Part shown: positions 27,692-50,400 of the stretch, one piece after another
Numbering within the stretch: the first letter of the stretch is position 1
How the letters are laid out: each line of letters starts with the position of its first letter
Source of the DNA: Octopus sinensis
Lineage: Eukaryota
Assembly: GCF_006345805.1 (NCBI RefSeq)
Contig: NC_043010.1
Coordinates: forward strand, 36,332,001-36,396,000
Reading direction: 5' to 3'
DNA: 64,000 bases
Program-made: the position numbers and the translations under genes
The notes under the pieces: model-generated
Database searches by the model: none
Told to the model about the DNA's origin: nothing
Seen by the model: the letters and a program-made list of their open reading frames with translations, nothing else

Positions 27692-30279
27692 GTGAGTATG
27701 AATAGCGGTTCTTTTGCTTTGTTTGTGTTAGAAAGATTCTTTTCTATAGCTTTGTGTAACCTGTTCGCATTTTAAACCAGCTATATCCTACCCAAATATT
27801 CTACCCTTTTTATGTTCAGACCAGACAGATCTAGCTTCTCGTATCTGCCCTACAATGTCATTCTAAAAATATACAACTGCGTCATCAAAATGTTGAAGCT
27901 ACAAGATAAGACATGATTACTTTAAAACAAATGTGAATAAATAAGCATTACATTTGACAGAATAATCTAAATTCAAAAGAGTTAAAGACCTTTGTATTAT
28001 GCATTTTAGGCACATCACTGATCACATAATTTTCTTAGATAAAGAATAGGCATGTGCACCCTGTCTTCTCTGAATTAGTTGACTGAGACAGGCAGAAATG
28101 ATAAATGCCCCTACGATTCAGAATCACATACTTAATTTTGCTGCACCAGCTTCCTCCTTCTCTGTCTCTGTTTGCTTGACTGACATAGAGGACTGTTGGA
28201 CTACAAATCTAGCCTCATCTCTTCATATAACTTTCCTGGGTTCTGTTTCCCCTTGACTTGGCTTTGTGGGGTCAGTGGAATAAAATATATACTAGGCATG
28301 GGTTTGGCTGTGTAGTTGTAGTGTCAATACAGTTGCTAGTTCCTTATCCAGAGTCTGACAGCTGCCTCCAAAATCTGAAATTCTTTTGAGTGAGAGAAGC
28401 ATCACAAATAGAAAACTTTCTGAAAGTGATTGGGACTTTTTTTTGTTTGTTTTTTTGAAATGAAGTGTTGTGAGCAAGCAAAAAGTGTGACTCTATTAAA
28501 AATCATTATTTTGTGTGTGTTTGTGTAGCAAAGTTGGAATCAGTACTACGGCTGTCATAATTATTTTCTTTGTAAAGTAGGTGACTTCATGCATTAAAAA
28601 AACCCCAAACCGAAATATCTTTTTCTTAAGATTTGAAATCTTTTTAAAGGAATGTATACTATGCCCCCTACAATTTATAGCTAAAGTACTTCGCTTCTTA
28701 GAATGACACATTTACAGCTATGTTTTGGATATATTTTCGAAATTAAATGTGTTTTCATTTTATTACAATTTTATTTCATGTCAGGAATATTGTACATTGT
28801 GTGTGTGTGTGTTGCTGCTGCTGCTGTTGTTGTTGTTGTTGTTGTTCTTTCGAAAAATGAATGTAGATCATACATTAAAATAATGATAATGATTTATTGC
28901 TTTTGAGGTTAGGTATTCAGATTTAGTATCTTGTAATCATAATTGATTATAACCAATCCTAACCAGTACAAGCATTTGACTGTCAGACTCTTCAACGATG
29001 CAGTTAATTGATTGTAGGCATTGGCAACAAAGAAAGGTTGGTGGTGGTAGTGGTGGTTTGGGATGAGGAGCTGTTGCTTCTGGTGTGGAATTATCAAGCC
29101 AGCAGCTAAACAAAGGGATCCTTGTGCACTCGTGGAAGTGGATTTCTTCTGGGTACATATGTCACAGAAGAGAAATAGTAGTTAGGTGTCCTGTTTCCAT
29201 TGTGAGTGAAGTTTTATGTAGGCTTTCTTGATTGCACTAGCCTCTACAGGTCTAATGGCTTTTAACATTCATACATATATGCATACATACATTACAAATG
29301 TGCATTCATACATTACACATATGCATACAAATGTGCTTACATTACACATAGATATTATCATGCAGATGCATACGCACACACACACACACACACACAAGCA
29401 TACATCTATGCATTCACACACACAACACTATCATCATCACCATTATCAATTTCTTAATTTTACATTGACTTCTTCCTTACTGACTTTAGAAGAATCTTCT
29501 TGAAGCAGTGCTCTATGGGTGTTTGCCCTTCCTGACTCTAATCTTACTTTTTTCAAGTAAAGTACTTTATTTCCACGTTTGCACTTGTTGGATCTGTGAG
29601 CTGTTGGACATGTTGTTTCTGGAATATATAAACCAGTGCTCTGCAACTTTTTTTTTTACTTGCAGTACACTTATATTCTTTTCAAAATTCGGCAGCACAC
29701 CTGAGCTAAAAATATAACTAAAAGTGTGTGTGTGGGGGGATTATTTTCAGGTTACACTGTGGCACACCTAGCATCATCTCATGACACACCAGTGTGCTGC
29801 AGTATACAGATTGCAGGGAACACTGATGAGGACAAATGCTACCACTGCCCAAGCACTGCTGATGCAAAGACACATGAAGACATACATATAAACTGGCTTC
29901 CATACATTTCTGTCATATTTCACTCACAAAAGCATTGGGCAACACAAGTCTATAATTGAAGATACTTGCCCAAGGTACCATACAATGCAATTGATCCCAA
30001 AACCACATGGTTGAAATGTGCAGTTATATCCTGTGTCTAGCCTAAATATATGAATGGAAACTATGCAGAAGCATATATACATAGGCATGCATGTGTGTTT
30101 ATGTTTGTAAACAGCAGTATAAATCAACGAATGTGTCACTAAAAGGAAGTAACTATCTTTAAAAAATATGCTGTAATGGAATGGGATGAACTTGACCAGC
30201 TGGTAAAGAGAGGTTGACATTGATAAAATGAGAACCAAATTAAATACCTGTGTATGTGTGATGGGTGGGGCATGATTTA

Positions 30280-30665
30280 ACTCTTTTACTTCAGTCATTG
30301 GATTGCAGCCATGCTGGGGCAATACCTTGAAGGGTTCAGTCAGACAGATCAACTCCAGTACCTATCTTTTAAGTGTGGTACTTCTTCTGTTGGTCTCTGT
30401 TTGGCTGAACCGCTGAGCTGCAGAGAATGTAAACAAACCAACATTGGTTGCCAAGCAGTGATGGGGGAACAAACACAAAGAAATGTGCATGCACACGCGT
30501 GCGCGCACACCCACCCACACACGTGCGCGATGGTCTTCTTTCAGTTTCCATCTACCAAATCCACCCACAAGGCTTTGGTTGACCCAAGGCTATAGTAGAA
30601 GACATTAGCCCATGATGTCACACAGAGGGATTGAACCCAGAACCATGTGGTTGGGATGCCAGTTT
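30280..30665 (-). mobile_element. Degraded family-A SINE
   Basis: Antisense copy with CpG decay. Confidence 0.75.
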
Positions 30666-31415
30666 TTTTTACCACACCTAGGAAAGATTATCTGTCAGAC
30701 ATTTTTAATAAAGTAAGAACAAAAGAAAAGAGCATTTCTATTTTCTGTCCTGACATTCTGATAATCCCTGTTTCCAGATATTTATATGTGGATAATTTCT
30801 CAATTTCATTTAAAGATACATTATTATTTTTTGGAATCAGTGCTTCAGTGAAGTTGTGTTCCCTTCATCGTGGTCCTTCATGACAATATTTGGTTGATTA
30901 AACCTTGAGCTTATTGTCTCTGTACTAGCATATTCCAGACTATGATCATTTCATCAATCTATTTTCCTTACTTTAATGTATCATATACTTTTTGCTTGTG
31001 AATGTATCACATGTTCTGCATATGACAATTCAGTTGATAAAAATCTAATGCATTTTCTACTTGTTGTTTTGAAACCAATCGAATCTCGATGACTTGGCAT
31101 TTTTGCTTATATCTTGTCATGTTAGCCTCTTTAATTATTTTAATAATCAGCTATGTGAAACTCAGAGTAATAATTCAAGATCCTACCTAATAAGATATAC
31201 TAACTCTATGTATTGAGTACTTTTGCGTTTGTAAACACAGACATTCACCATTCCACACATATACATGCACTTAAGCATAGACAAGCATAAAAGAAGAAAT
31301 GATGTGTATATGTATCCATGCATGCACGTGCAATAGTCAGGCTGTTCAGTAGAAACACAACAAGCAGCTGAATAAATGGTTGCAGCGGAAAATTGATCTT
31401 TTCCCGCTATTGATG

Positions 31416-31455
<40 letters not shown>

Positions 31456-32419
31456 TGTGTGTGTGGAATTTTTGTGCTATTATTTATTTACCCCATTTTA
31501 CCCCCACCCCCACCCCACAGCTTCCCATTTCAGTAATTATCTACACATATCATCTGCGTTATAAATATTGTTTGCACTCACTTCAGAAATTAGTTAGACG
31601 AACAACTTAGTCATACTCATAAAACTGAGCAGTGAAGGGAAGTAATTTCAGTTTTATTCCATCCACCCATCCATTAACCTCATTTTGAAAACCATATGAA
31701 AGGCTGGAGAGATATAACTGCTGTCAGTTTCAAACTTTCACAGGATGTCTTTCGATAGGTCATAACCTCATGCTGAGTTATGGATTGAAAAGTCAAGAAG
31801 TGCAATTCTGACTCGACACTGTCCTGACTTTACGACCAAAATCTCCACTGTCTAGTAATGGTTTGAAATTGACAGAAACATTTGTGCTTTGAATTTTTAA
31901 TATGTTTTTTTTTGAAATTATATAATTTAGCTCTACATTGTGTGTGTGGATTGGATTGGATTAGATTCCCTATATTCAGTCCGGTGCAGGACTAAGACTT
32001 CAGTATGTTCTTTCCACCAACCATGGTCTGATAAGGAGTCCTTGAATTTGAGCTTGAGATCACACTGGTTTGATGAGCCTACTCTGTCACACTGGCTCAA
32101 CGTATCTTGGCAGAGGGGGAGCAACTTTTTTACTCTTGCCCAGGAGTAGTTAAGTTGATTACATTCAACCCCAGTGCTTAATTGGTACTTATTTTAATTA
32201 CCCCTGAAGCAATGAAAGGCAAAGTTGACCTCAGTGGAATTCGAATTCAGAATGTAAAGACGGATGAAATACTGCTGAGCATTTTGCCCAGAATTCTAAT
32301 GATTCTGCCCACTCGCCGTGTGTGTGTGTGTGTGCGTGTGTGTGTGTGTACGTGTGTACATATAAGGTGAGTGAACAGAATCATTAGCATGCTGGGCAAA
32401 ATGCTTAGCAGTATTTTGT

Positions 32420-32455
<36 letters not shown>

Positions 32456-33732
32456 ACACACACACACACATTACTGGTGATGTTATGGAAGGAGTTAGTT
32501 GTAGTATTGAACATGGTAGTAGGTATTTCTGTTTCATATTTTGTGCAAAACGAAAGGTGTGTGTGTATGAGGGTGTGTGTGGAGAAAGTGACGTATATTG
32601 CTGATGTTTGATCAAATGCATCCCAATCATGACAATCCAGCTTGTTATTAATGTCATATATCTAGAACTGCATTATCCAGTGTGTTGTTTTTTTTTTGGG
32701 TGATATTAGGGTATAATTTGAAGGGGATTTGGTTGGTATTTCTAGCAGCTGTATCACAGTTCCCTAGTTGGTTTGTGTACTCGGATGATGGATCAAGGGA
32801 TGGGAGAGGAAAAGATGAAGGGGGAAGTAAACCCTTTTAGTTGTAAATAATTATAGGGTAAGCCTGCTTAGGGAACAGTTTTGAGTTGAAAGTGATAAAA
32901 AGAAAGAGTCAACAGTGAGAGAGAGGGATGTTACATGAGATCATTTCATATCCCCTCCTCCACCCCCATCAAATTATTTCTCATTTCTATGAGTCCCCAC
33001 ACCCACTTTTTTTAAAGTCTATCCCCATCTCAATTCAGACTTCCCTCTTTTCTTTCTTCTCCAGTGATTACTGCTAAAAGCTTAAAAAATAAACGGAAAT
33101 CAGTTCCACAACCATTGATATTTTCCTCCTCTTGCTTTGTTAATCTCCTTTCAGTTGTTGTTTCCTTTAACTAGGCAGAGAGATAGACAGACAGACAGAT
33201 AGATAAAGGGGGAAATAGGGAGAAAGATGCAAAAATGAGAGAAAGAGACAATGTGAGTTGGTCAGGAAGATGGGTAGGAGAAGATATGTTGTCAAATAAA
33301 GTACTGAGACTGAAAAGGTAAGAAGTCGGTGAAAAGAAGCATAAAAAGATGGTGAGAGGTTGGAGAGAGGGAGAGAGAAAACAAGAGATTGTGAAGTGCG
33401 ATAGAGGCAGAAACGAAGACAGGAATGAGAAGAAAATGAGAGATTGGTTGTAAGAGAGACAGGAAAAAAGAAAATGATGTGAAGAGATAAGCTAGCTATA
33501 AAGGGGGGAGAGTAGAGATTTTGATAGAGAAAAGGCTGACATGAAAATTAAGTGCTTTGTTATTTCAATTGAGTGGTAGTTTAATCATGTTGTCAGGAAA
33601 CCAGTAAATTGCTTCTCCTTTAACTAAACCAGTGAGTTAGTTAACTTGCTTACTCATTTGTGCTCGCTGATCTGTTTGTCACTCTGACAGTATTTTTTAA
33701 ATCTTTTGTCATTTCACTATCCCTAACAAGTG

Positions 33733-33766
<34 letters not shown>

Positions 33767-34199
33767 GTAAGAGGGAGAGAGAGAGAGAGTGTCAGCTATC
33801 AGATATGTTTGTTTATATATAGTCCTTAACTATATGAAGTGAGTTAGCAAGGGTCTCTTTGATTGTACAATGCAGTGTCACACAGAATTATAGCACTATC
33901 TTCTCTACAACTTTTATTGAATTTACATTGGTACAATTTTTTTCTGTGGCATCCATTTTAAAACTTGCATGAGTTTGGCTGTAGAGCTGCCCAACTTCAA
34001 GCACCTATTCTGTCTTAACTTGGTACTTTACAAGTTTATTTTGCAACAGTTGCAAGAAACTATGTGATCAACTGGTTCAAGCAAGAGACCAAACCCAGAT
34101 ATAAATTAATAGCCTCACTAAATTGAAACAGTTCTCACCTAAAGATTGCAACAGCATGAAACTTGTTTCCTAAGATAAACATTCAGTTTAAATAAATTA

Positions 34200-34950
34200 T
34201 TGGGTTGGCTAAAAAGAAGTCTGCTTTTTTTAAGTGAAAATGCAACACAAGTTTGAAACACAGCGAATTCTTCAATCAATGATATAATTATTATTTTGTT
34301 CAAGTATCTTATGCTATCTTGTAGGCAAATTCATTATTCTTGGCTCAAAGAATTTCCAGTCTTTACTGGCAGAAAACTCTTCCAGGTGGATATTTACATC
34401 CTCACAGAGTTGGTCTGTCCATTCAATGAATTTTGAAGAGACCAAAGCCTGTGGAAATCTGAAGGTGCAAAGTCAAGCAAATATGGAGGGTGCAGCAAAA
34501 CTTCATAGACCCCCCCCCAGTAACTTCTGCATTTGCAAAGAATTCTGTGGTCTGGCACTGTTGTGATGAAAGACAATGACCTTACGAATAATCAGTACTG
34601 GACACTTCTGGTGGACCACTGCATTTAATTTGTCCAGGTGGTTACAGTACACATCTGAATTTATAGTTCTATTCAGGGGAAGAACCTCTTAAAAGACAAT
34701 ATCTTTTCAGTCTCATTAAATTGAAAGCATAACCTTCAATGGGTGAAGTCTGCCTTGGAGAGTGGGTGTGGTGGTTCACTGCACTTCTTTCAACACACAC
34801 TATGATGCTCCCATATCATCAGCCACTAAGGGACATGCTCAACTGGTTAAGTTCAAACAACTGACAAGAAAATCTGTGGTATTGAGCAGAATATTTGCTG
34901 TAGCCCATCTTTTATACCAAGACAAAACAATGTACATGATAACACTTCCA
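34200..34950 (-). mobile_element. Decayed mariner transposon (transposase C-terminal relic plus one TIR)
   Basis: HPPYLLDFAPSDFHRLWSLQNSLNG matches the mariner HPPYSPDLAPSDY.LF.sL motif. TA-TTGGGTTGGCTAAAAAG TIR-like end at 34198-34217. Confidence 0.75.
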
Positions 34951-35098
34951 ATCAGTTAAGATTAGCAGCCATGAGAGCCACTGTCTGGTACTGCATAAGG
35001 GCATATAAAAGGACAAAATCCTTTGTAACTTTCATCCTGTGTTTAGTCCCTTTATGTTTTAATTGACTTTTGTTAGCCCTTGTGGCCATTAAACAAAC

Positions 35099-35100
35099 GA

Positions 35101-35154
<54 letters not shown>

Positions 35155-35168
35155 CATTATTATTATTA

Positions 35169-35210
<42 letters not shown>
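35099..35210. repeat. Long (TAT)n microsatellite with CAT variants; source of the poly-Tyr ORF
   Basis: Directly visible. A second tract lies at about 35361-35412. Confidence 0.95.
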
Positions 35211-35211
<1 letters not shown>

Positions 35212-35363
35212 TTTATTTTTTCTTTTAAATTTGCTTCCATTTCTTGCCGAGTGTCTTCCCGACTCCTAGGGCAAAGAAACTCATAGTATACATTGGTAGG
35301 CCATTAAACCAAACTCAATAGTTCATTAATTTTTTTTTTTTTAAAGTTAAATTATTATCATTA

Positions 35364-35412
<49 letters not shown>

Positions 35413-35567
35413 GTTGCTGTTGTTGTTACTATTATTGTTTATTAATGTTGTTTTCCTTCTCTCTTCAGGTTGCTGCTGATGTCTCAGCTTACCAGTGTTG
35501 AATGGACATACTCTACACAGAATGTTGGTAATTTCTCCCAGCTTCTCTGTACTTCATTTCCCGTCAA

Positions 35568-36020
35568 ATGCTGCAGTTTGGAAATGTCTCAGTAAACTAG
35601 AAACTACTTGGCTGGAGTCTTGGCAACAACTACATCAACGCTACTACTGCCACCACCACTACCACCACCACCATTACAGCCACCCATAGTAACAGGATCA
35701 TTAACAAGACTAACAGCACAAACATCATCATCATCAACAACAACAACAAAAATATCACAACTGCTATCAAAGACCACAACAGAAGTAACAGCACTTCTCC
35801 TCCTCTTACTACAACTACTACTACTACCCCTGTCAGAATCACCAACACCGGGACTGCCGCCGCCACTGACACCAACAACAAGAACAGTTGTTTCAGAGGT
35901 GATGACAACAATTACAGCAACAAAAACAACAGCATCAGTACCAATATCAACAGCAGCGGCAGCAGCAGCAGCAACAACAACAACAGCAGCAGCAGCAACC
36001 AGAAGCACAAGTGTGAACAG
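35568..36020 (+). CDS. Possible N-terminal extension of the Ski/Dach-like protein, interrupted by one TAG (35598-35600)
   Basis: ATG 35568 is in frame with ATG 36021. The frame is open from 35601 onward with the same Thr/Asn/Ser-rich composition. Confidence 0.35.
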
Positions 36021-37985
36021 ATGAGTCAAGCTGTTAGCGACAGAACCGGTGACACCAAATGCAAAGTGTCTGTGACCACTAATGCGACTACCACTACTAC
36101 CGCTACCACCACCACTATTGCTACTGCCATCACTACCATTACTACCACCTCACCAAATCTAGATACCAATAATAATAATAACAATAATAGTCTTGCTAAC
36201 ACTGCTGTCAACAGCAACAACAACATAAGCACCCTTCTTACCTCCACTAGCGCCACCACTATTCCTAGTACTCCAACTACCACCTCTGCTTACATCATCG
36301 ACGACAGCACCAACATCATCAAGAGCAGTACTATTAGTGCTTGTAGCAGTGGTAGTATCACCAGTGGCAATAATAATAGTGGCAGCAGCAGCAGTAGTAG
36401 TGCCAGTGACTGTGGTGGCACTGGTTTCGGTGGTAGTGGTGGCAGTGGTAGATATCGGTTCAGTGAGCCATCGTTAGTTACGGCCTTGACAAAAGCTGAA
36501 CCAGTTAACCCGTTGCTGGCAACGCTTGGTGTGAAACCACCGCCACCGACCCGACAGGCAAGGAACGGGGTGGTTCGGTCACCAAACTCTTGTGCCATAA
36601 TCACTGCCACCACCACCACCACTAATAACAACAACAGCAACAACAATAATACTTGTAGCACTGCCAACACCAGCACAAACAGCAACTGTAATAAAAGCAA
36701 GTGCAGCAGTTTTGTTGACATTTACAAAAAGCAGCTTGCATTTTTGGTGCAGCAGTCTGGTGACAGCAAGAGCAGCGCCGGTGGAAGCAGCAAGAAACCA
36801 ACGGAACTGTTGGATAAAAAGAAAAGGGTAACAGACACCATTCCGCCAACTTCCACCCCAGGTTCACCTCCAACTCCAGCATCTCTACAGCCACTGCAGC
36901 CTTCGTCTTTACCATCTCCACTGCAGGCGGCACCGCTTCCAGCAGCTGTTGCAGAGTGTCACCAGGTCGTGACGAAGTCAAGCAGCAGCAGCAGCAGCGG
37001 CACCGAGAGCCACAGTGGCAGTGGTCGCAACAATTGCAATAACAGCAGAAAGACTAGTGATCCTCAGTGTCAGGAAGTGACTTCATCCCGGTTGCTCTCT
37101 GACCGTTTGCCCTCAATTTCTTCAATCACCACAGCCCTTTCACCTTCACCTTCACCTTCCCCTGCCGTCCTGCCCTCGCCCCTGACATCCCCTCTGCCCA
37201 GCCTAACTGATGAGAAGGACAGCTGTTGCACTACACGCAATCAGAGTCATTACAAAAACACTGGCAACGGTGGCTACTGCAACAAAAACAACAGCACTGA
37301 CGCCACTGGTACCACTCTGAACCACAACCACAACCATCATCACCACCACAACAGCACCAACACAGACACTGCTGCATGCTTTGATCATGTTAGTACAACA
37401 TTTGTAGATAATAAATTTAGCACAGAAAACAACAATAACCACAGTACTAAGTTGGGTCCATCCCTTCTCAGCAAGAATACTCAACACAACAACAACAACA
37501 ACAGTAGGGAGTCTTTCTTTGAAGATCAGCAAAGACCTGTCGTCACACCATTGCACGTCATCGACAGCAAGTGTGATGGCAGTAAGACTAAGACATTGCA
37601 GCAACAGCAGCAGAAACAACATCAGTCATTACAACCACCACCACTACAACAACAACAACAACAACAAAAACTGCAACTACAAACAGAACAACTGCAAGAA
37701 AAGCAAATGCCACCTACAGCCAAGCATCTTGTAGCAACAACAAGAACAACTGCCATAGCAGCTGCAGCAGTCAACAGAAGCAGTGGAGCAACAAGTGATG
37801 AAGAGTTTCATCCATCACTCTCTTTGATATCTTCAGCAGCCTCAGCATCAGCTTCTTGCCAGCAGCAAGATGACAGAAGACAAAGAAATGTCTTGTATAC
37901 GACAACAACAACAACAGCAACGTCTCTGTCATCACCACCACCACCACTATCAACAAAAGCAGTAGAAGCAACAACAACAACAACA
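36021..37985 (+). CDS. Giant exon, segment 1: low-complexity T/S/N/Q/P N-terminal region of a Ski/Sno/Dach-like protein
   Basis: 696-aa ORF free of SINEs. It joins the next frame if one A is added to the (ACA)n run at 37986. Confidence 0.7.
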
Positions 37986-40900
37986 CAACAACAACAACAA
38001 CAACAACAATACCAGCATCATCAGCTTTGTCGTCGTCGTCGTTGTCGTCGTCATCATCATTATCATCCTCCTCCTTGTCATCAACATTGTCATCAACAGC
38101 TGCAAAAATAACTGCAACAGAAGCATCAAAAGTGTCTGCAGTAACAACAGGTTCAGTTTCAGCAATAACAGTTTCAACACCAGCAGTAACTGCAACAGCA
38201 ACATCAATAACAACAACAACAGCGTCATTACCATCACCACCATCATCTTCATCATCATCATTTTCATCAACTGTGCAAAAACAGCTGAAGATTATTTCTG
38301 CTATCAACAACAATAGTACTACCAACAACAACAACAACAACAACACACCCCCTTCCAACAGTATTGTGACTATCAGTAGCAGCAGGACTAATACTAACAT
38401 TAGCACTACTGCCCTTAAGACTCAGGCTGCGGGAGATGTACATTCGGCTGTAGCGTCAGTCGAAGGTGGAATGAGCAGGAAGCGCACTGCTGCTGGGACT
38501 ACTGTTGTGTCCAGTGGAGCCAGTGGTGTGAAGCGAATGATGTGCAAAGTGAGCAGCAGCACTGGAGGCGGTGATAGCGGTGGTGGTGGCAGCAGTGCTG
38601 GTAGTGGTAGCACTAACAGAGATACAGGAATATTAGTAGTGACACCTGAATTCACTGCTTCGGGCGAAACGGCATTTGAAGAGATTGCAAGGAGCTACAG
38701 TACCCCAACAGATAATAGCGGTCCAGGAAATTCCCTTGCTGCTGCCGCCCCTGAGGCCATCTCCAACACTGCAACCACCCCTGATTTTCCTGTTGTCGTC
38801 CTACCCCATGCTACTTCACCTCAAAATGCTGTCGACTCTGTCACAAGCCTTGCAGGTATAAGCAGCATCGGTGATGCTAGTGGTAACAGCAGCAGCAATA
38901 TTGGTAACCCCAACCACCACAGTAACATTCATAGTAACCAGGACATTGATAAAACTCAAACAGCTATCGGTTTGAATCCTACCACTGGCCTTACAACCAA
39001 CACTGCAACTGAAATCGTTACATTCACCACTTATACCACTACTGCCATCGCCCCTACCACTAACAATGACTCTAACGTCCTTGCTACTAACACAAGTACT
39101 TTGTGTTCACTTTCTAGTTGCATTGACACTGGTTCAAATAGCTGTTTAGGCAATGAGGTTGGCTCTGAAGCACAACAGTCACAACCACCACCAACACCAC
39201 AACAACAGAAACAACTATCACCACCACTTCCTCTACAGCAAAATCAACTGTCATCACCACTACCACTAAGACAAAATCAATTGTCACAACTAACACTACA
39301 ACAACAAAAACTATCACTACAACCACCACTACAACAAAACCAGTTGACACCATCACCACTACAACAAAAGCTACCAACAGCAACAACACCACTGAAACAG
39401 CAAACACAACCATCACTACAACCACAGGAACCATTGGCATCCCTATCATTACAACAACAACAACAACAACCACGACTGCATCAAATACCATCACCTGAAC
39501 AACTTGAGCAACTACCACAACAAGAGGACAGAGAAAATAACATTGTGTTGGTGCCTGTTTCAAATGATGAAATTGTGACACAACAGCAACAGCAGTCACA
39601 GTTACTGATGATGATGCACCAAAAATGTGACACAGACATTAACAACAGAGACAGCCTCCCCAGCAGTAACACATACAGTGCAGCGAGACTGGCTGCAGCC
39701 ACCAACACCTCCACCACCAATGTCAGCAGCACTTGCACCTTCACCACTGCCACCACTATCACTATGAATAACACCAATATCAACACTTCTCAAATCATAT
39801 CACCACCATTACTACAGTGTTCACAGCCATTACCACCACCACCACTGTCTGCACCATTGTTAACAACTACCACACCAGCCACTTTCAGCAACCATGCATT
39901 GGACACTTTCCTCAGTCCACTTCACACAGACAGTACAATTGTTCCTGTCACAAATAGCACCTGTATTTTTCCAACATCACTGTCAACGTCATCCTCCTCT
40001 TCATCATCCTCATCCCCCTCTTCCTCAACTCCTTCTCTGTCATCTCCAGCCTTGTTTTCTCTGCTTCCTCCATCATCTATAGTCTCCTCTTCACAAACTG
40101 TCAGCGTACCACTACAGAATACCTCGACAAAACAAACCAACTCCATTTTGACATCGCAAGATGCTTCTTTGTTTCTCAGCAGAAGCAACGCAGAACCTTC
40201 AGTTCAATCGGCAATGGTAATGCCACCATCTACTCCAATTCAGTGTCAAGTAATGCCAACAACAGAAGCAGCTTCTTCTGACTGCAGTAGCGATGAAAAC
40301 TCCTATGATGGCTGTGCAAGCAGTGAGCCTTCTTCAAAACCGGATATAGATTCTCCAGAGTCGTTTGTTGCCTCAACTCAAACTGGGTTCGATAACAGTG
40401 AGCATGACGAAAGCACAGAAGACAGCATTGGCAACAGTGCCAGTTATACTGGGATATCGTCATCGGTATATGCTAAAGACAACATTTCAAAAGTTTTAGA
40501 CAGCCATTACAAAAGGATAAAAGACCCAGCCTTGAAGAGTACTTATGATATGGAGTATGGCATGAAACTCTGTCAGGACTTCTGCATCAAAGATGGCAGC
40601 AATTTTGCTCGAGATGTGCTTTTGCACTCAAGTGTTGACCACATGTGCAAGTCCTACAATGTTGATGATGATGATGGTGAAGATGATGACAATGTATATA
40701 AATATTCTTTCTCCTTGCCGAGCAAGAAAAACATAGATGCTCTTGACTGTAAGAAAACATCACCAACTTCTGGTCTTGTCAGTGATTTGCTGAGGTGTAC
40801 CACTGCCATTGCTGATGATCACTCTTATTGTTGGTCAGTGTCGAAGACACAAGAACCAGAATCGCTCTTGCGAGACGCGTATCCGTGTGATGATGAAGTG

Positions 40901-43608
40901 TCTGACTCGAGTTCGTTGGATGACATTCCTGATAAGCAGGAACATTTAACTTTCTTAACTCAAAATGCATTTCTTAAAAACAACAACCCCAAAAGTGTTG
41001 AGACGAAGACTTCGTTTTTCTCACCTGCTTCCCAATCTATCCGGAAGCAAATTGTTGGGAAAGACAAGAAAATGCAGCTGAACTTAAACAATGGGTGTGT
41101 TTCTTTAGATTCCAGTGGTTTTAATATTTGCAGTAACAGCAGTAATTTTAAAATGGCAACAAATTCAACAAATATGTTATGTAAGACTATTCCAAATAAC
41201 CTAATTAATAATAATGATAATAATATTATTAATAATAGTAGTTGTAGTGGTAGTTTCAATAACAACAGTAATAATAATGTTGTTGACAGCATTACGCCAA
41301 ATGGGGACAAGTTTGTCACTGACTTTTCCTCCTCTGGACTTGAAGAGAAAACACATTTAAGTTTCAATAGCTATTACCCTTTTGAATCAAAGTTTGCTGA
41401 TGAAAGGAAAGTCAATGGCTTATCTAGTCCAGTGCAACTCTCTGAGTTGTCACCAAATTCTCGATCACCCAAAATCACTCCTTTAAAGAATGTCAACAAC
41501 AGAATGAACACACAGAGCTCTCCCAAAATCGGAAGCTTTCGAATTGGCACATACGGATCAATATCCAACAAAGAGTGGGAGGAAAACGTCGATTCTGATA
41601 CCCCATTGACTGTTGGTAGCATCTCTATGTCAGATAAGAAGCGAGAGACATTCACATTTTGCCACAAGAAAGATTTATCTGACAGATTATCTGCAAATGA
41701 TGATCAGAAAAATACAGGTCTACTTTATGAGAATTCCATGGATGTTGATGACGCTGTTAAAGCACTGAGCAGTGATGGTATGAATGGTTTCAAGTTTCAG
41801 GAAGAATCAGTTAGTAGTATTAACTACGCTCATATTCTTCATGACCATGACTACTGTATACGAACAGCAATTTCTCCAACCAAGTCTGAACTTGCAAAAG
41901 AACTCTTTAGCTCTAAACTACTGCCATCATCAACCTCCTCAAAGATATCTAATCTTTCTTCAACAAAGACAGCAGTTGTCTCAAATGAGTGTTCTAGTTC
42001 TCCTACAAACACCCCTGTTACCACAGAAGCAAAGAACTGGCGTAAACCCCGCAACAGTAACAGCAAGTCAGTTGACACATCTGAAGATGTGTCTGTTTCT
42101 AATTTACCTCTTAAAATTGAGGAACCTGACCAAGAAAGTGCAGAAACCAGCTGTGAGACCTCTCGTACCAACGAGAGTAAACTAAAAATAACTGGTAGCT
42201 TTCAAAATGATTATGTATATTTTCTTAATAAAACTGCTCGCAGTAGAAGGCGATTCAGCCATGAGATCTTGCCAGACAAAAACCTTCAATCAAAGCACTA
42301 CTCTGACATTGTTATTCCTCACTTGACTGATGCAGACCTTGAGGCTCTGAAGCGTCGGCAAAATAAATGCAGCCCAATGTTAGATGCATCAGCTGCCTCC
42401 AAGAACCTTTGTGATGGAAGTAATGACATGGAGATTGACAGTAAACTGATCCGCTCAGTTATGAACATGGATAATCCCAGTATGGACCCTGACATGGAGT
42501 ATACTCTTCCTGTACTCGATAATGGATTCGTCTCCGAAAGCATGTCAACAAACTCGGAAGTCTGTTTTACGCCAGAAGATATGGATATTCTGTACAGTGC
42601 ATTTAAAATGGTAGAGAATGCAAACGGCTTTCGAAGTTTGGATGAAATCCGAAAGACTGCTGACAGCTTTGATGGCATGCAGAAACAGATGAACTCTTCT
42701 GTGTCTATGCTTCAAGAGGACCAAATTAACCCCTGCATGACAGCTGTCAATGAGAGTAAAGAGCCATTTGTAAACTCCGATTGTATGAGCTCTGAGGAAG
42801 CTATCAATGAGTCAGCACAAGTCCATGCTCATGGCTTGCCTCCGGATAATACTTTACTAGATTTTGAAAATATGCCTATAAATGATATGCATAATATGAT
42901 AAGTAATGAGAGAGACAAATTTAAGGCACCAACTCTTGCTTGTTCTCAAGAAAGTGATCTAAACCAATCTGATTTGAACAATTTATGCTCCAGCAACCCT
43001 AGTGCAAACTTGACTGATTTGCAAATACCATCTTTGGAGAAATTTGACTTGTTAAGTGGTGATTTGCCATTAAAACTGGACAAACCAGACTTATTTCTTG
43101 AGCCTACTGTCGAAGATATATCTACAGTTCCTGACTGTAACCCGCCTTGGATTGTAACTGTTACTATGTTTTGGAATGATTTGCCTGCCATTATGATGGA
43201 CCACCATCCATACATACGTCTTGTAGACATCCATAAACAAATTCTTCCTGCAAAAGATACAGGAATACTTAAAAAACGTTGTCAGCTTCTTGGCCTTCCT
43301 GTACAGAACTGCACAGAATTTCAACGTTACTTTTTAGTGCAGTATGGACGTGCATACAATTCTAAGAGTACATTGGTTATTTCAAAGGATGATGCCAAAT
43401 CTTTAATTGGCTACTATGTGAACCCACCACCCCGGGCACCAAAGGGTGAAGGTAGTGAAGATGAGCACGGCAGTCCAGAGAAACGAATTCTGAAAACAAA
43501 TGGTTCTTTGGAAGGAAGAATGAAAAAACAAGCCAAGACCATCGGATCAAAGAGGCAGTCTTTGCATAAGAAAAATCTGTCTTTGGAAAACCAGCTAAAT
43601 CGAGAAAG
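37986..43608 (+). CDS. Giant exon, segment 2: low-complexity region, two DHxY motifs and a divergent Ski/Sno/Dach (DHD) domain (43142-43420)
   Basis: 1868-aa ORF. IRLVDIHKQIL...CQLLGLPVQNCTEFQRYFLVQYG...ISKDDAKSL aligns almost ungapped with SKI LCLPQILNSVL...[23 protein letters not shown]...ITKTDAERL. Donor AG|GTATGA at 43608/43609. Confidence 0.85.
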
Positions 43609-43799
43609 GTATGATATGTACATATATAGGTAATGTATTCTATTGTTCTGTAAATGTTGCGTTGTTTGTATTAGAAGAGGTAGGAGTGGTTAGCATTGAA
43701 GAAAATCAAAATATGTGTAACTTAATACTTTTAGAAATCTTTTTAGGTAAAGGCATGGCTTTTGTGTGTGGGCCATGTGTTGTATGTGTGCATGTATCT

Positions 43800-44180
43800 T
43801 TTACCCATTGCTTGTTGCAGTCATTAGACTGCAGCCATACTGGAGCACTGCCTTGAAGAGCTTTTAGTTTAAAGAATCGACCCCAGTACTTTATTTTTAA
43901 GTTTAAGCCTCATACTTTTACTATCAGTCTCTTTTGGCAAACAGCTAAGCTATGGGGATGGAAACACACCAACACCGGTTGTCAAGTGGTGGTAGACACA
44001 AAGGTACACACACACACACACACATTGGGCACCTTTCAGTTTCTATTTACCAATCTTTCTCACAGGGTTTTGGTTGACCTGAAGCTATAGTAGAAGACAC
44101 TTGCTTAAGGGGCCACACAGTGGGACTGAACCTGAAACCATTTGGTTGGGAAGTAAACTTCTTACCACCCAGTCACAGCT
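43800..44180 (-). mobile_element. Degraded family-A SINE in the intron
   Basis: Antisense copy. Confidence 0.75.
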
Positions 44181-44529
44181 GTTCATGTGTGCATAGTTAA
44201 AATACTTATTTATTGATCAAATGGTTCATAAGTTCCAATTTTACAATTATCATTGTATTTTTCCCTTGAGTAATTACCAAGCTCTAGGCATTGAAGAATG
44301 GCAAACTGGATGGCTTTCCTAATTGCTTAAGTCTTAGTTATAAAGTTTTTAGCGTTATGTAGCCTCAGGTTCATTCAGGCAAACTGAAGAAATTAAAGAT
44401 GTATGTCTGCTTCCAATGACAACGCAATGATTATAAGATCTGAAAACATTAGCTTATCGATAGTGTTCCCACACATTTACTGCAACTAAGCCCATCAGCT
44501 CTACTTATCACACTTGTATATACAAGACA

Positions 44530-44569
<40 letters not shown>

Positions 44570-45262
44570 ATTATTATTATTATTATTCATGTCATTGTGT
44601 TGTTAGTCCTGGAAATGTTCTTTAGTTTCAAAGTGTGGTATTTGAATAAAGCATTTTGAACCACCCATCAGTTGGTATGAGAGACGAGGAGTGGCTATTT
44701 AAAAAAACTTGTTTTTCTAAATTGCCTTTTGATGTTTGTTGTTATTATATTTTTCAGAATTCATTTTTATATAGAAATTCTTATAGGATTACAAGACTTG
44801 AAATCATGTCACTGCTGCTGCTGCAGTAGTGTGTGTATGTGGACTTGGATGTGTGGGTATCTGTGTCACATAGATATGTATTCTTATGTACACAACATGT
44901 AAAGGTTAATTAACCCTTTAGCATTCAGATAACTCTGTCAAATGTAATGCTTATTAATTCACACTGTTTTGAATTAATCATGTGTTATCTTGTAGTTTCG
45001 CGATTTCAACAACGTGATTATTTATGATTAAAATAATACTGTAAGGTGAGTGTGAGAGGTTAGATCTGGCCAGTTTGAAGATAAAACAGGTAGATTATTT
45101 TGGATGGATATGGCTGGTTTAAATACTAAAGGGTTAATAGTCTAATCTTTCTCCCCCCCCACACACACACGTGTGTGTGTGATACATGTACATTATAGTG
45201 AAACTATTTATAGGATTACTATACTACTGAAGTTCTTTATATTTTAAATGTAGTTTTTCTTC

Positions 45263-45700
45263 CATCATCATCATCATCGTTTAAAATTTGCTTTCCATGC
45301 TAGCATGGGTTGGAAATTTGACTGAGATCTGGCGAACCAGATGGCTGTACTAGACACCAATCTGATCTGGCAGTTTCTACGGCTCGATGCCCTTCCTGAC
45401 GCCAACCACTCCGAGAGTGTAGTGGGTGCTTTTATGTGCCACCGACACAAGGGCCAGTCAGTTGGTACTGGCAACGGTCACACTCAAATGGTGCTTTTTA
45501 TGTGCCACCTGCACAGGAGCCAGTCCAGCGGTACTGGCAACAACCTCGCTTGAATGATTTTTTACGTGCCACCAGCACAAGTGCCAGTAAGTCAATGCAA
45601 GTAACAATCACCCTCGAATGGTGCTTTTTACCCACCAGCACAGAGGCCAGTTTGTTGCTCTGCTCTGACAATGATCATGCTCATATGGTACTCTTAGCGC
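45263..45700 (-). mobile_element. 3' end of the RTE element (tandem units plus (GAT)n tail) in the intron
   Basis: Reverse complement of the 12480-12918 type sequence. Confidence 0.8.
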
Positions 45701-45793
45701 TCCTACTTATTTCTATTTACATATGTGTATGAATGTGTGTGTGTGTGTGTAAATATATATATATGTATACATATCTGTCTTTGTCTTTTGCAG

Positions 45794-47955
45794 GACATTA
45801 AGTGAGAAATCAGATGACCAGCCTGTTGAGAAACAGTCGGCCAGCCCATCTAGATTTGATAGCACAACAGTGTCCGAGGCAGTAACTTCAACAACATCAG
45901 CGGCATCGAAAGTTCGTGTCACTTCCTCATCGCCTCCCTTGACAAGCACCAGGTCACGCTTGCGTCACAAGAAGATAAATTTTCTAGACTTGATCCGCGG
46001 TGAAAGCGGGTCATCGTCTGCTTCATTGTTGCCGTCACACTCGTCATCATCTTCGATTGCACCCACCTCTTCTGGCTCAGTAGACATTTCCCCATTGGCT
46101 GGCACCATGCCGGCCCATTCCCTAAGATCCTCTTCTGCATCCTCCCCTTCCTCCTCCTCATCATCTTCATCGTCATCCACCCTGTCTGCCCTTTTCCCGC
46201 CTCTCTCATCTTCACTGTCACCCCCGCCATCCCCGTCATCTAACAGTGCCCTCTCCTCCAACAAAATGCACAGTGCTGTGGCCCTTGCAGGAGAGGAGGC
46301 TTCGTGCACCCGGAAGCAAGGGCTAGCTGTGGGTGCAAACCGATTGAAGGGTGAAAAATCATTTGCTGGCTCTCGTCAGCAGAAGAACGGTAATAAGGGA
46401 CAAGTGATGCCATCACTGATGTTGCTACAGCAACAGCAACAGATGAACAGCTTGTTAACGAGTGAGTGCAATAGCTCGTTAAGTTCATCTCCTGATGCAA
46501 TCAACAGCAGCAGCAACGGTGGTGGCAACATCAAAGTCAACAAGACCAAAAAGCCACCAAATGACTGCAAATTGGTCGGTGGAGGTGGCGGCGGAGGAGG
46601 AGCAGGGCGACGTTGCTACAACCAAAAGAATGGTCTGAACGGTAGGCGGCAGAAGAATGGCGATGAGAAAGAGGCAGCTGGTAGTCACTGTGTCGGCAAG
46701 TTGCCAGCGAAAATCTCCAAGTGGGCAAAGCCGAATCGAGGCATCGGTCGGCGAATTAAGAAGAACAATAGCCGGCTGAAGGTGAAGCTAAAACTGCAAA
46801 CCCCAAACCATAGTCTACCGGGCAGCACAAATGATTTCAGATTTATTAATTCCACCATCAACACCACCAACTACGACAGCAACTATAACAATACTAACAT
46901 TAATAATATTATTAATAATAATAATAATAATGGTAATATTAACAACAACAATAGTCACATTAACAAGAATATTAGCAAAAACAGAAACATCACTAATAAT
47001 AATAACAATAATAATTATAGCAGTAGTGGCAGAAGCAACACAGCCATTAACCCTTCCAAGTCCATCACAGCAACAAAAACACTAACAACAACAACAACAA
47101 TGCCAGTATCATCAACTACAACAACAACCACAACAACAGTAACAACAAACAATAGTAGTAAGCCTCCCAGTCATAAAAAACGTTTAAGAGTCAACAAAAT
47201 GCAAAGCATTTTTGACGTTATTCATGTTCTCCGTGAGGATGTAGTAGCAGACAGATGCATAGGTGTGCAGGCAGGAGAGCTTCTGACAAACTTGTACATA
47301 GATAGAGACTCCAAGTGCATCAAGTGCACTACTTGTACAGAACTGTTTTCTATCGTACACTTTATGCAGCATCATCAGCATTCAAACTCCGGTGTCAGTT
47401 GCCATAGTGACTTACCTGTGTCAGCTTCACCGTTATCGCAACAACAACAAAAACACCAACACCAGCAACAACAACAACAGCAGCAGCAGTTGTCATCGCC
47501 ATTCTTGTCATCATCGTCATCATTGTCAACACCACCAACATCTTTACCACCTTCACTTCCAACACCAGATACAGTACGGGAGCTGTCGTCAACCCCGTGC
47601 ATGTGGCGTTTGAAACTCAACAGCAATACTTCTGAGAGTCAACAGAAGTTGTGGAAACACTTCTTGAAGAAGCAACATCAACTGCAGAGCAGGCAGCAGT
47701 CTCCTCCGAAATCTGGCAATGGCATTAGATTTTATACGTCGGCTAACATGTTGCTCTTGGAAAGCCAGCCATCCAACCTGAAGCAAGGTGGAACTAGTGC
47801 AAATTCTTCAACCTCTCGAGTGAGTTCCCGTAAACGCAAACAGAAACAGTTCTATCCAATTGAAAACTATGAATTCAAAACTGCTCTTAGCTCTGCGGCA
47901 CACAGCAGGAATTCAGCCGGCACATCAGTAGTGAGCAAAGTAGCAGACACTATGG
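45794..47955 (+). CDS. Terminal exon, segment 1: basic NLS-like tracts and a Ski-type SMAD-binding SAND-like Zn domain (47211-47381; W-helix about 47598-47675)
   Basis: CIGVQAGELLTNLYIDRDSKCIKCTTCTELFSIVHFMQHHQH has the same spacing as SKI [41 protein letters not shown]. The end coordinate is approximate. Confidence 0.85.
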
Positions 47956-48445
47956 TGGCGCGGTTGTCAAAAGTCCTGTTGGTGCTGCTTCTGGCCGAGC
48001 AATGAGCTGTAGTATGGGGTTGAGTCCCTCCAAGAAAACCATGAAACTTTCGCATCAGCCATGCGAAGGTGCAGCTATGTCTGTGTCGTCGGCACCAGGC
48101 TCAGCCAAAGCTGTGATCCTCCCTGGCGTTAGTGGTTCATCTGCCTTCTCCACGCCACAACAAACTCTCAATCCCACGGCAACCACAGCCCATAAAAAGA
48201 ACAGGAACAACAAAAGCAACCACACAACCACCAACAAAAGCAACAACACAACTACCAACAGAAACAACAACAACACAGCCACCAACAAAAACAATACAAC
48301 TACCAGCAAAAACAACTCAACCACCACCACCACTAACAACAACAATAGCAGTAGCAGTAGTTTATCAGAAAATGTTGTAACTTTAAAAAATGAACCAGAA
48401 CTGCTGAACTTTACTGCATTGCAAACCGATGATTATGATATGTGA
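47956..48445 (+). CDS. Terminal exon, segment 2: probable true C-terminus (..LKNEPELLNFTALQTDDYDM*) after a 1-nt frame break
   Basis: This frame is open from 47891 to 48445, and composition changes abruptly to A/T-rich UTR-like sequence after its stop. The uncorrected frame stops at 48005. Confidence 0.55.
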
Positions 48446-48771
48446 GGTTAAAAAAAAAATAAAAAAAAGAAAGAGAAAAAGGTAAAAAAAAGGGGAGAGG
48501 GGGAGAAAACACACGCACGCACGCAGAATAAAAAAAAAACACAAAAAAACTGAAGATGATAAGTAGAGGGAATTAGGTTTCTTTTTCTTGTTTTTATTTT
48601 TTTTTTCTATTCTGTTCTCCATGTTTTTTTTTTAATTTTGTCGGGTGGGAAGGACATTTCTAAAAAGAAGGAAACATTTTCATTTTTTTCTTTTATTTTT
48701 TAAACTCAGTTTTAAAATATATTTAAAAAAAAAAGAAATAGAACATATATATATATGTATGTATATGTATG

Positions 48772-49476: not shown

Positions 49477-49918
49477 TATTAATTGTCTGTAGACAAAATT
49501 ATATAACATCTTCATGCCATAATTTTTCTCTGTGTAAAATATTATCAGCTGGTTGCAAATCCTTGCTGAATGTTTTTTATTTCAGAGATTTCTTTCTTTT
49601 TAATGGATTGTTGTTTTCACTATGACTGCTGAGCACTATCTACTCTTGACTGTGAGAGATGGCTGTTGCCTTCCTTGAATTCCTCCACCGTTTGGTGGGT
49701 TTTGTTTTTCATCCTGCATTGTGTCCAAATATCACACTCCACACCAGTCAAGCTTGGTGAAGTTTCTGGATTAGATGTCAACAACCCATCCATGCAACAA
49801 GTTATACTGGGTTACATGTTACCAGTAGTTCAAGATCCATTATGTATATATATATATATATATATAAAATGTCCCACCCATGCTAGCATGGTAAGCAGAC
49901 GTTACATGATGATGATCA

Positions 49919-49954
<36 letters not shown>

Positions 49955-50400
49955 AATTGTCTGTAGACAAAATTATATAACATCTTCATGCCATAATTTT
50001 TCTCTGTGTAAAATATTATCAGCTGGTTGCAAATCCTTGCTGAATGTTTTTTATTTCAGAGATTTCTTTCTTTTTAATGGATTGTTGTTTTCACTATGAC
50101 TGCTGAGCACTATCTACTCTTGACTGTGAGGGATGGCTGTTGCCTTTCCTTGAATTCCTCCACCGTTTGGTGGGTTTTGTTTTTCATCCTGCATTGTGTC
50201 CAAATATCACACTCCACACCAGTCAAGCTTGGTGAAGTTTCTGGATTAGATGTCAACAACCCATCCATGCAACAAGTTATACTGGGTTACATGTTACCAG
50301 TAGTTCAAGATCCATTATGTATATATATATATATATATATAAAATGTCCCACCCATGCTAGCATGGTAAGCAGACGTTACATGATGATGATCATGATATA
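49477..50400. repeat. Direct tandem duplication, about 474-bp unit bounded by (TA)n
   Basis: 49622 aligns to 50096. The copies differ by one A/G, one T indel and TA-tract lengths. Confidence 0.95.

Follow-up and report, generated by a model that had tools for sequence, protein, structure and literature searches.

The question raised by a 64,000-nucleotide stretch of the Octopus sinensis genome (assembly GCF_006345805.1, contig NC_043010.1, positions 36,332,001 to 36,396,000 of the forward strand; hereafter the window, in whose coordinates all positions are given) is what kind of Ski/Sno/Dach protein is encoded by a very long gene in its second half. Ski/Sno/Dach proteins are central co-repressors in TGF-beta (transforming growth factor beta) and bone morphogenetic protein (BMP) signalling and in organ determination, and their recognised members are SKI, SnoN, SKOR/Fussel, DACH, DAF-5, and SKIDA1. 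An initial annotation of the window had described a giant, divergent member of this group carrying a Dachshund-homology domain (DHD) and a SAND-like zinc domain, and had suggested an uncharacterised regulator of TGF-beta/BMP signalling. Our analysis indicates that the predicted octopus protein is an ortholog within a conserved family, PF25867, which appears to form a separate and divergent branch of the Ski/Sno/Dach superfamily, and that the SMAD-related part of the earlier proposal is weak.

A DHD Recognised by Its Fold

The exon containing the DHD retrieved 46 homologs (E 3e-51 to 3e-22), every one of which had already been annotated as PF25867 "DHD", and the octopus domain was 47-80% identical to these homologs in the best BLASTP alignments. 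The placement in PF25867 relies on this precomputed annotation of the homologs, since the model was absent from the Pfam library that we scanned, and a negative hmmscan is thus uninformative for PF25867. Twenty columns were invariant among the 47 DHD sequences and all 20 are found in the octopus domain, which fits the family type RLVDIHKQ.LPAKDTGILKKRC. The mollusc-type signature RYFLVQYG is present in the window, where non-mollusc members have RDFLIRY.

The classical Pfam model, Ski_Sno_DHD (PF02437), gave no match at E ≤ 10 for either 43112-43450 or 43040-43620, and its maximum among the relatives scanned was 13.5 bits, for the Littorina relative, against a cut-off of 24.5. Searches of the DHD against PDB sequences by phmmer and hmmsearch also returned nothing. 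As both approaches were empty, classical DHDs are linked to the octopus DHD by fold comparison only. An AlphaFold2 (AF2) model built on the 46 homologs had a predicted local distance difference test score (pLDDT) of 81, and its 12 best PDB matches were DHDs of SnoN, SKI, and DACH1 only (E 6e-6 to 9e-3, target template modelling (TM) score 0.72-0.85, root-mean-square deviation (rmsd) 2.1-2.7 Å over 91-96 aligned columns, 14-17% identity). These comprised the SnoN DHD 3eq5 (E 6e-6, target TM 0.75-0.85, rmsd 2.1-2.7 Å), the SKI DHD 1sbx (E 6.8e-6), and the DACH1 DHD 1l8r (E 2e-3, TM 0.74-0.76), which fits less well in structure than the other two. After the 12 DHD structures, the next match fell to E 0.2, and DNTTIP1 (2mwi) was a marginal one at E 3.1. 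The octopus domain is therefore a DHD at the level of the fold, a mixed alpha/beta and winged-helix-like one, with a sequence outside the classical family, in keeping with the DHD-like domain first noticed at 43142-43420.

A Ski-Type SAND-Like Zinc Domain Interrupted by an Insert

The second domain was recognised directly by a classical profile. Pfam c-SKI_SMAD_bind (PF08782) matched 47211-47381 with 33.9 bits (E 3.6e-8, cut-off 25), and scored 20-33 bits in the relatives. When the SAND-like region was compared with PDB sequences by phmmer, SnoN (5c4v_B, E 0.0014) and SKI (1mr1_C, E 0.054) were found; a profile of 21 family sequences reached SKI at 3.8e-5 and SnoN at 6.1e-5, over a zinc core of about 39 residues only, the homology ending just past the His pair. 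A word-indexed search of 5.8 billion protein sequences with 47190-47900 returned nothing at E ≤ 0.01, the domain being both too short and too divergent to be picked up in so large a collection.

The AF2 model of the domain had a pLDDT of 69 overall, above 90 in the zinc core, below 50 in the insert described below, and 83-89 in a strand (residues 140-143) and a helix (residues 149-168) that follow. Its top five PDB matches were the SAND domains of SnoN and SKI, followed by those of GMEB1 and SP140, and its core aligned with SnoN and SKI over 54-56 columns with an rmsd of 2.4-2.6 Å and 28% identity. The two domains were thus confirmed where they had first been seen, far beyond chance: of the two classical profiles, c-SKI_SMAD_bind matched and Ski_Sno_DHD failed, and the two domains were modelled with a SAND fold and a DHD fold, respectively.

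Within the family, no variation was seen in C-x2-C-x2-C, a Phe, H(x)H, or a Trp further downstream, and W155 and F158 are invariant or nearly so. The octopus protein has HHQH in place of the HxH of its relatives. In octopus, 90 residues separate HxH from the conserved Trp, compared with 29-38 (median 31) in 34 relatives, which reveals an insert of 61 aa. An insert rich in Gln and Ser had been announced ahead of the Trp helix; it is present, although its length is 61 aa and not about 70.

SMAD-Binding Determinants

SnoN contacts SMAD4 through strand beta5, residues Arg314-Trp318 (R-T-C-H-W), with Trp318 occupying a hydrophobic cleft and Arg314 forming a pair with Asp424 (PMC5387736), and the SKIL mutant R314A/T315A/H317A/W318E is unable to bind SMAD4 (PMC7834018). 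In the phmmer alignment, the octopus segment SNSGVSCHSD aligned with SnoN KRTCHW, so that V-S-C-H-S stands opposite RTCHW, and the relatives had GGLIS, GKLIS, LLAAE, and similar residues at these positions. Where proteins of the SKI/SnoN/SKOR subfamily have a C-terminal coiled-coil dimerisation region, only about 205 low-complexity residues follow the zinc core in octopus. The octopus protein also carries a lineage-specific C-M-W just before the Trp helix which, as it is not conserved in the family, was not taken as a retained SMAD4 contact.

The N-terminal R-SMAD motif of SKI, T-L-x2-F-x3-S-x2-S-L-x-G-P, contains eight residues that do not tolerate substitution: T20, L21, F24, S28, S31, L32, G34, and P35 (PMC7834018). 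No match to this motif, by strict or relaxed regular expression, was found in the conceptual octopus protein, in the + strand frames of 30001-48500, or in family members above 600 aa, which upholds the earlier remark that the motif is missing.

Lack of conservation in the contact strand, together with the missing R-SMAD motif, makes a classical Ski-type capture of SMAD4 unlikely. With both determinants missing, the "SMAD4-binding" label is thus inherited from the name of the Pfam model and is not a supported function. The idea that the protein is nonetheless a SMAD4-binding TGF-beta/BMP regulator like SKI, SnoN, and Fussel, despite its unusual architecture, draws on several observations: the PF08782 threshold is passed, the fold resembles the SAND domain of SKI and SnoN, the zinc ligands are conserved family-wide, the Cys-His of RTCHW is kept in octopus, and each characterised protein with this domain binds SMAD4 (PMC5992185, PMC6382215). 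We consider this idea unlikely, since the equivalents of SnoN Arg314 and Trp318 (PMC5387736, PMC7834018) are Val and Ser in octopus and unrelated residues in the orthologs, the match with the SKI/SnoN profile is limited to the zinc core and stops after HxH, in octopus the presumed contact strand runs into the 61-aa insert, and none of the family members searched carries an R-SMAD motif. The proposal of a TGF-beta/BMP regulator made in the initial annotation is therefore not supported by the sequence.

A Conserved and Uncharacterised Family

A profile made from the DHD alignment was searched against 1.84 billion representative proteins and returned 125 cluster representatives at E ≤ 0.001; the three weakest matches of at least 160 aa were scanned and gave no above-threshold match to PF02437. 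Full-length relatives measure 602-2,523 aa, and the octopus protein, at about 3,270 aa, is the longest seen. All 16 named relatives belong to Mollusca, Annelida, Nemertea, or Brachiopoda and are described as "uncharacterized" or "hypothetical". They include bivalves (Mercenaria, Mactra, Sinanodonta, and Dreissena), gastropods (Littorina, two species of Patella, Lottia, Bulinus, and Candidula), the nemerteans Lineus and Tubulanus, the brachiopod Lingula, and the annelids Owenia and Dimorphilus. UniProt names such as "Putative Dachshund-homology domain-containing protein" and "c-SKI SMAD4-binding domain-containing protein" were assigned to them automatically, and our literature searches found no description of the family. 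The family has thus already been catalogued automatically by Pfam (PF25867) and UniProt, and is unstudied in the literature searched. The description of a giant and divergent member of an uncharacterised Ski/Sno/Dach subfamily was borne out.

The SAND-like module lies downstream of the DHD in about 30 members. Both domains are joined in single proteins of Mercenaria (XP_053407292), Lineus (XP_064631056), and Lingula (XP_013389843) and in a single 1,887-codon open reading frame (ORF) of a metatranscriptome contig (P0072/L007), and the related locus L004 shows a DHD exon, an intron, and a SAND exon as in the window. These proteins, this ORF, and this layout argue for one gene and not two. Downstream of the DHD exon, a SAND exon was sought in six related loci; only L004 and the transcript L007 had one, and none was seen in the available flanks of L001, L002, L003, L005, and L006.

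Outside the two domains, the family is marked by short motifs. Orthologs share FNPLD[VIL]LA.AA.L (degenerate in octopus), DH[SD]Y[AC], KI.GS[FY]Q..[FY]VYF with a basic run, DIV[IV]PHLTDAD, HKKINFLELLRG, and a C-terminal SRKRK..Y..Y.F; in the conserved core, the VYF motif takes the form GS[FY]Q[DN][DE][FY]VYF. From these comparisons, the conserved core amounts to about 600 aa, made up of the FNPLD motif, DH[SD]Y[AC], the VYF motif and basic run, the DHD, HKKINFLELLRG, the SAND-like module, and the C-terminal RKRK..Y. The minimal ortholog is DgyrCDS8517 of Dimorphilus gyrociliatus (P0167, 602 aa), which keeps every conserved motif and defines the family core.

In octopus, the large exon contains DDHSYC (40817), HILHDHDYC (about 41831-41857), KITGSFQNDYVYFLNK..RSRRR (about 42182-42250), and DIVIPHLTDADLEALK, and its tblastn and blastp blocks are common to the relatives P0060, P0051, P0106, and P0072 and to the loci L003 and L005. 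DH[SD]Y[AC] occurs two or three times per protein family-wide (octopus DDHSYC at 40817 and HDHDYC at 41843; P0060, P0066, P0080, and P0167), and may bind metal or a partner. The N-terminal family motif, [EDG]FNPLD[VIL]LA.AA.L, lies at residues 3-33 in about 40 relatives; in octopus, only a degenerate copy, EPVNPLLATLGV, was observed at 36498-36533, about 160 codons past the first ATG, and tblastn of the window revealed no better copy. Downstream of the SAND-like domain, the C-terminal motif contains a second basic cluster resembling a nuclear localisation signal (NLS), SRKRKQKQ, at 47826-47849.

In a non-mollusc clade (L001, L006, and L007; P0066, P0072, and P0080), canonical AT hooks, KRGRPRK, follow GS[FY]Q..VYF. 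This clade was sourced only from unannotated assemblies and metatranscriptomes (GCA_022702875.1, JGI 3300021313, and ENA ERZ28675667).

The spacing of the two domains was also examined in the family. In the conceptual octopus protein, the DHD ends at about residue 2485 and the SAND-like domain starts at about residue 3022, and the 537 aa measured between them agree with the separation of about 530 aa reported at the outset. This separation is not an octopus peculiarity, however: the disordered linker ranges from 42 to 556 aa in relatives among bivalves, gastropods, nemerteans, brachiopods, and annelids, with a median near 300, and is 42 aa in the 602-aa protein of the compact annelid Dimorphilus, so that octopus stands at the upper end without being unique. 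Given this range, the wide spacing is a family trait and not an octopus oddity. What is specific to the octopus protein is its extreme length and the 61-aa insert in the SAND-like domain.

These data also bear on whether the gene could be a plain octopus ortholog of SKI, SnoN, or SKOR/Fussel stretched by low-complexity expansion. Its domain order is indeed SKI-like, as is the 42-aa linker of Dimorphilus, and the DHD model is nearer to SnoN and SKI than to DACH1. Yet PF02437 fails, with at most 13.5 bits against 24.5 in the relatives scanned, the family has a Pfam model of its own, the family profile reached no above-threshold PF02437 protein among those scanned, no RTCHW strand, R-SMAD motif, or CHWGF signature is present, and FNPLD, DHDYC, GSFQNDYVYF, and HKKINFLELLRG have no Pfam match. 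We know of no SKI counterpart for these four motifs either. Molluscs also have conventional ski and dachshund genes of their own. Such a plain ortholog is, in our opinion, hardly credible, and the separate PF25867 branch accounts for the protein: neither an ordinary SKI/SKOR ortholog nor a sequence devoid of profile or structural matches was found, as PF08782 passes its threshold and both the DHD and SAND folds are matched.

Gene Model

The window is AT-rich eukaryotic DNA, with a GC content of 0.32-0.47, and its + strand contains three very long ORFs between about 35.6 and 48.0 kb (35601-38108, 836 codons; 37874-43630, 1,919 codons; 45753-48002, 750 codons). From these, we predict a two-coding-exon gene on the + strand at about 36021-48005 (Table 1). 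The conceptual protein was obtained by joining the frames across the frame break at 37874-38108 and across the intron at 43609-45793. It counts about 3,266 aa from the ATG at 36021, with S+T+N+Q making up 41%. The protein is thus a giant, as had been claimed, but of the 3,400-3,560 aa given originally, 3,400 aa is reached only if the ATG-less frame from 35601 is counted.

Table 1. Predicted coding segments, domains, and motifs of the PF25867-type gene in the Octopus sinensis window.
Feature	Position	Strand	Remarks
5' part of large coding exon	36021..37984	+	Frame of 35601-38108, from first in-frame ATG; N/T/S/Q-rich
Overlap of two open frames	37874..38108	+	235 nt within a (CAA)n/(ACA)n run
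Remainder of large coding exon	37985..43608	+	Frame of 37874-43630; donor AAG|GTATGA at end
Dachshund-homology domain, PF25867 type	43142..43420	+	Core RLVDIHKQILPAKDTGILKKRC nearly invariant across family; homologs and AF2 model
Intron	43609..45793	+	GT...AG, phase 2; (TTA)18.7 microsatellite and interspersed repeat inside
Last coding exon	45794..48005	+	Stop codon 48003-48005; mostly low complexity
Conserved linker motif HKKINFLDLIRGE	45966..46004	+	77-79% identical to L004 and Mercenaria P0051
Basic cluster HKKRLRV	47172..47192	+	Putatively NLS-like
Ski-type SAND-like zinc module	47211..47411	+	Q.GE...LY, C-x2-C-x2-C, F, H-H-Q-H, then SNSGVSCHSD
PolyQ/S/P insert, 61 aa, inside SAND-like domain	47412..47594	+	Absent from all relatives examined; model confidence low/unreliable
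Strand PCMWRLKL and conserved Trp helix (..QQKLWKHFLKK) closing SAND-like domain	47595..47675	+	Alignment and model
C-terminal motif SSRKRKQKQFYPIENYEF	47823..47876	+	Basic cluster, then aromatics; matches L004 (SSRKRKVSQLYSSDEYTFF), Mercenaria P0051, Dimorphilus P0167

The two domains had been placed in different exons, and the intron separating them was supported by its GT-AG borders and by an in-frame junction. The donor lies at 43608/43609 and the acceptor at 45793/45794, as a polypyrimidine tract TTTTGCAG|G, and the split codon AG+G restores an Arg, giving ...NRE-R-TLSEKSDD.... An intron of about 4.2 kb occupies the equivalent position in the related locus L004. The stop codon was judged fitting, because the relatives end 20-35 residues past the same C-terminal motif. 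A second + strand ORF at 47891-48442 (184 codons, N/T-rich, ending ...LQTDDYDM*) overlaps the gene end out of frame and terminates right before an A-rich tract. As the relatives end near the 48003 stop, it is probably low-complexity sequence of the 3' untranslated region, or may alternatively provide a longer C-terminus through a frameshift.

The 5' half of the gene is less regular. The predicted frame shift between the first two ORFs must fall inside 37874-38108, and could reflect one base lost from the assembly, a genuine indel or polymorphism, or a very small intron. In 36021..37984, no similarity to the relatives was detectable except for the degenerate N-terminal motif. It could be argued that the locus is a decaying pseudogene, or that the 5' low-complexity frame 35601-38108 lies outside the gene, given this frame break, the degenerate N-terminal motif, and the fact that no record in the searched collection exactly matched an ORF product of the window. 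We regard this as improbable, because the frames of 1,919 and 750 codons are uninterrupted in a genome of about 38% GC, no damage is seen to the family motifs, the two domains, or the splice sites, and the break falls within a run of trinucleotide repeats, a setting in which assemblies often contain indels.

Surrounding Sequence

Downstream of the gene, a 457-codon ORF on the − strand (61123-62493) matched Pfam RVT_1 (116 bits, E 1.8e-33) and is probably a retrotransposon fragment. Apart from this fragment, the other long ORFs in the window had no Pfam match, and no tRNA gene was found in the window. An interspersed repeat was observed in the intron (45270-45700) and at 12471-12905 (− strand), and its internal tandem units (GTGCTTTTTATGTGCCACC...GGCCAGT...) measure about 65 bp. 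The intron copy is about 80% identical to the other one, located 32 kb upstream on the opposite strand, and short fragments were seen at 49867-49916 and 50342-50391. Trinucleotide microsatellites are also present, with (TTA)18.7 at 44532-44587 in the intron and a long (ATT)n at 35355-35415 just upstream of the coding region.

Comparison with Known Ski/Sno/Dach Proteins

Like SKI and SnoN, the octopus protein has a DHD followed, in the same order, by a SAND-like Cys/His zinc module; its DHD model superposes on 3eq5 and 1sbx (TM 0.72-0.85), and its zinc core aligns with 1mr1_C and 5c4v_B. Unlike them, its DHD, 16-17% identical to theirs, fails PF02437, it has neither the RTCHW strand nor the N-terminal R-SMAD motif, and it is four to five times longer. 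The DHD (91-192) and SAND domain (219-312) of SKI are adjacent (PMC5992185), in contrast to the 537-aa octopus linker (42-556 aa in the family).

Compared with its PF25867 relatives (Lottia V4AE08, Lingula LOC106158434, Mercenaria LOC123546155, Lineus LOC135489583, and Dimorphilus DgyrCDS8517), the octopus protein has the same motifs, domain order, and C-terminal motif, and differs in being the longest and in its 61-aa insert, degenerate N-terminal motif, and HHQH. Unlike the non-mollusc clade, it has no AT hook. In SKOR and Fuss, the two domains are adjacent and strongly match the classical Pfam models, whereas the octopus family matches only PF25867 and, weakly to moderately, PF08782. The octopus family nevertheless resembles SKOR1/2 and Fuss in carrying a DHD and a SAND-like domain. 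SKOR1/2 (Fussel-15/18, CORL) and Drosophila Fuss are described as nuclear co-repressors with histone deacetylase partners that possess a DHD and a SMAD4-binding SAND-like domain (PMC6382215, PMC3413677).

With DACH1/2, the octopus protein has the DHD fold in common (1l8r, E 2e-3, TM 0.74-0.76), and both would be large nuclear regulators, a role that is predicted for octopus. DACH and SKIDA1 are without a SAND-like zinc module, and DACH has a second conserved C-terminal domain, which was not seen in the octopus protein. SETBP1 (with its "SKI homology region"), AHDC1, SKIDA1, and DNTTIP1 were considered as candidate vertebrate counterparts, but none of them is known to contain the family motifs.

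Proposed Role and Significance

Taken together, the explanation that we consider probable is a two-coding-exon ortholog of a separate Ski/Sno/Dach branch (PF25867) acting as a nuclear co-regulator scaffold. The protein would be a scaffold for transcription or chromatin co-regulation with two folded docking modules. The nearly invariant DHD may dock a partner that is itself conserved: a protein of the co-repressor type, following SKI, or else DNA, which has been proposed for DACH. A fixed partner is suggested by the near invariance of the DHD core across phyla. A second surface for docking would come from the zinc module, and short linear motifs may lie in the long disordered regions, whose length is free to drift. 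The octopus protein has been inflated to about 3,270 aa by N/T/S/Q-rich low complexity, including the insert in the SAND-like domain. A nuclear role is suggested by the HKKRLRV and SRKRKQKQ clusters, by the AT hooks of the non-mollusc clade, and by what is known of characterised DHD and SAND proteins, all of which regulate transcription in the nucleus (PMC5992185).

Several points weigh against this explanation. The retained Cys-His of RTCHW and the C-M-W of the octopus protein may form a non-canonical SMAD4 contact. Confidence in the SAND-like model is only moderate (pLDDT 69), and the insert keeps its Foldseek E-values weak, at 6e-3 to 6e-2. The 5' half of the predicted gene is uncertain, given both the degenerate N-terminal motif and the break in frame at 37874-38108. 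For the family as a whole, localisation in the nucleus, partners, and binding of DNA are inferred features. The presence of canonical SKI, SKOR, and DACH genes in the same genome is an expectation. Finally, a restriction of the family to spiralians is provisional, as it considers the named relatives only.

If the family is nonetheless confined in this way, a tentative and rather doubtful extension would be an extra, spiralian-specific Ski/Sno/Dach branch in which the ancestral DHD and SAND pair was kept and the interaction loop rewired, the branch either continuing to act on BMP/TGF-beta-dependent patterning by way of a new interface or having become a SMAD-independent chromatin scaffold. Were this true, the branch would represent a lineage-specific developmental regulator that nobody has studied.

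For annotation, these results mean that the label "c-SKI SMAD4-binding domain" on proteins of this family is not evidence of SMAD4 binding. More broadly, a further conserved branch of the Ski/Sno/Dach proteins, visible so far only as automatic database labels, carries both hallmark domains without the residues that define SMAD binding, and may serve as a natural experiment on what the DHD and SAND pair does when uncoupled from SMADs. The family is also a candidate lineage-specific regulator for spiralian development, of which the 602-aa Dimorphilus ortholog would offer a tractable minimal version.

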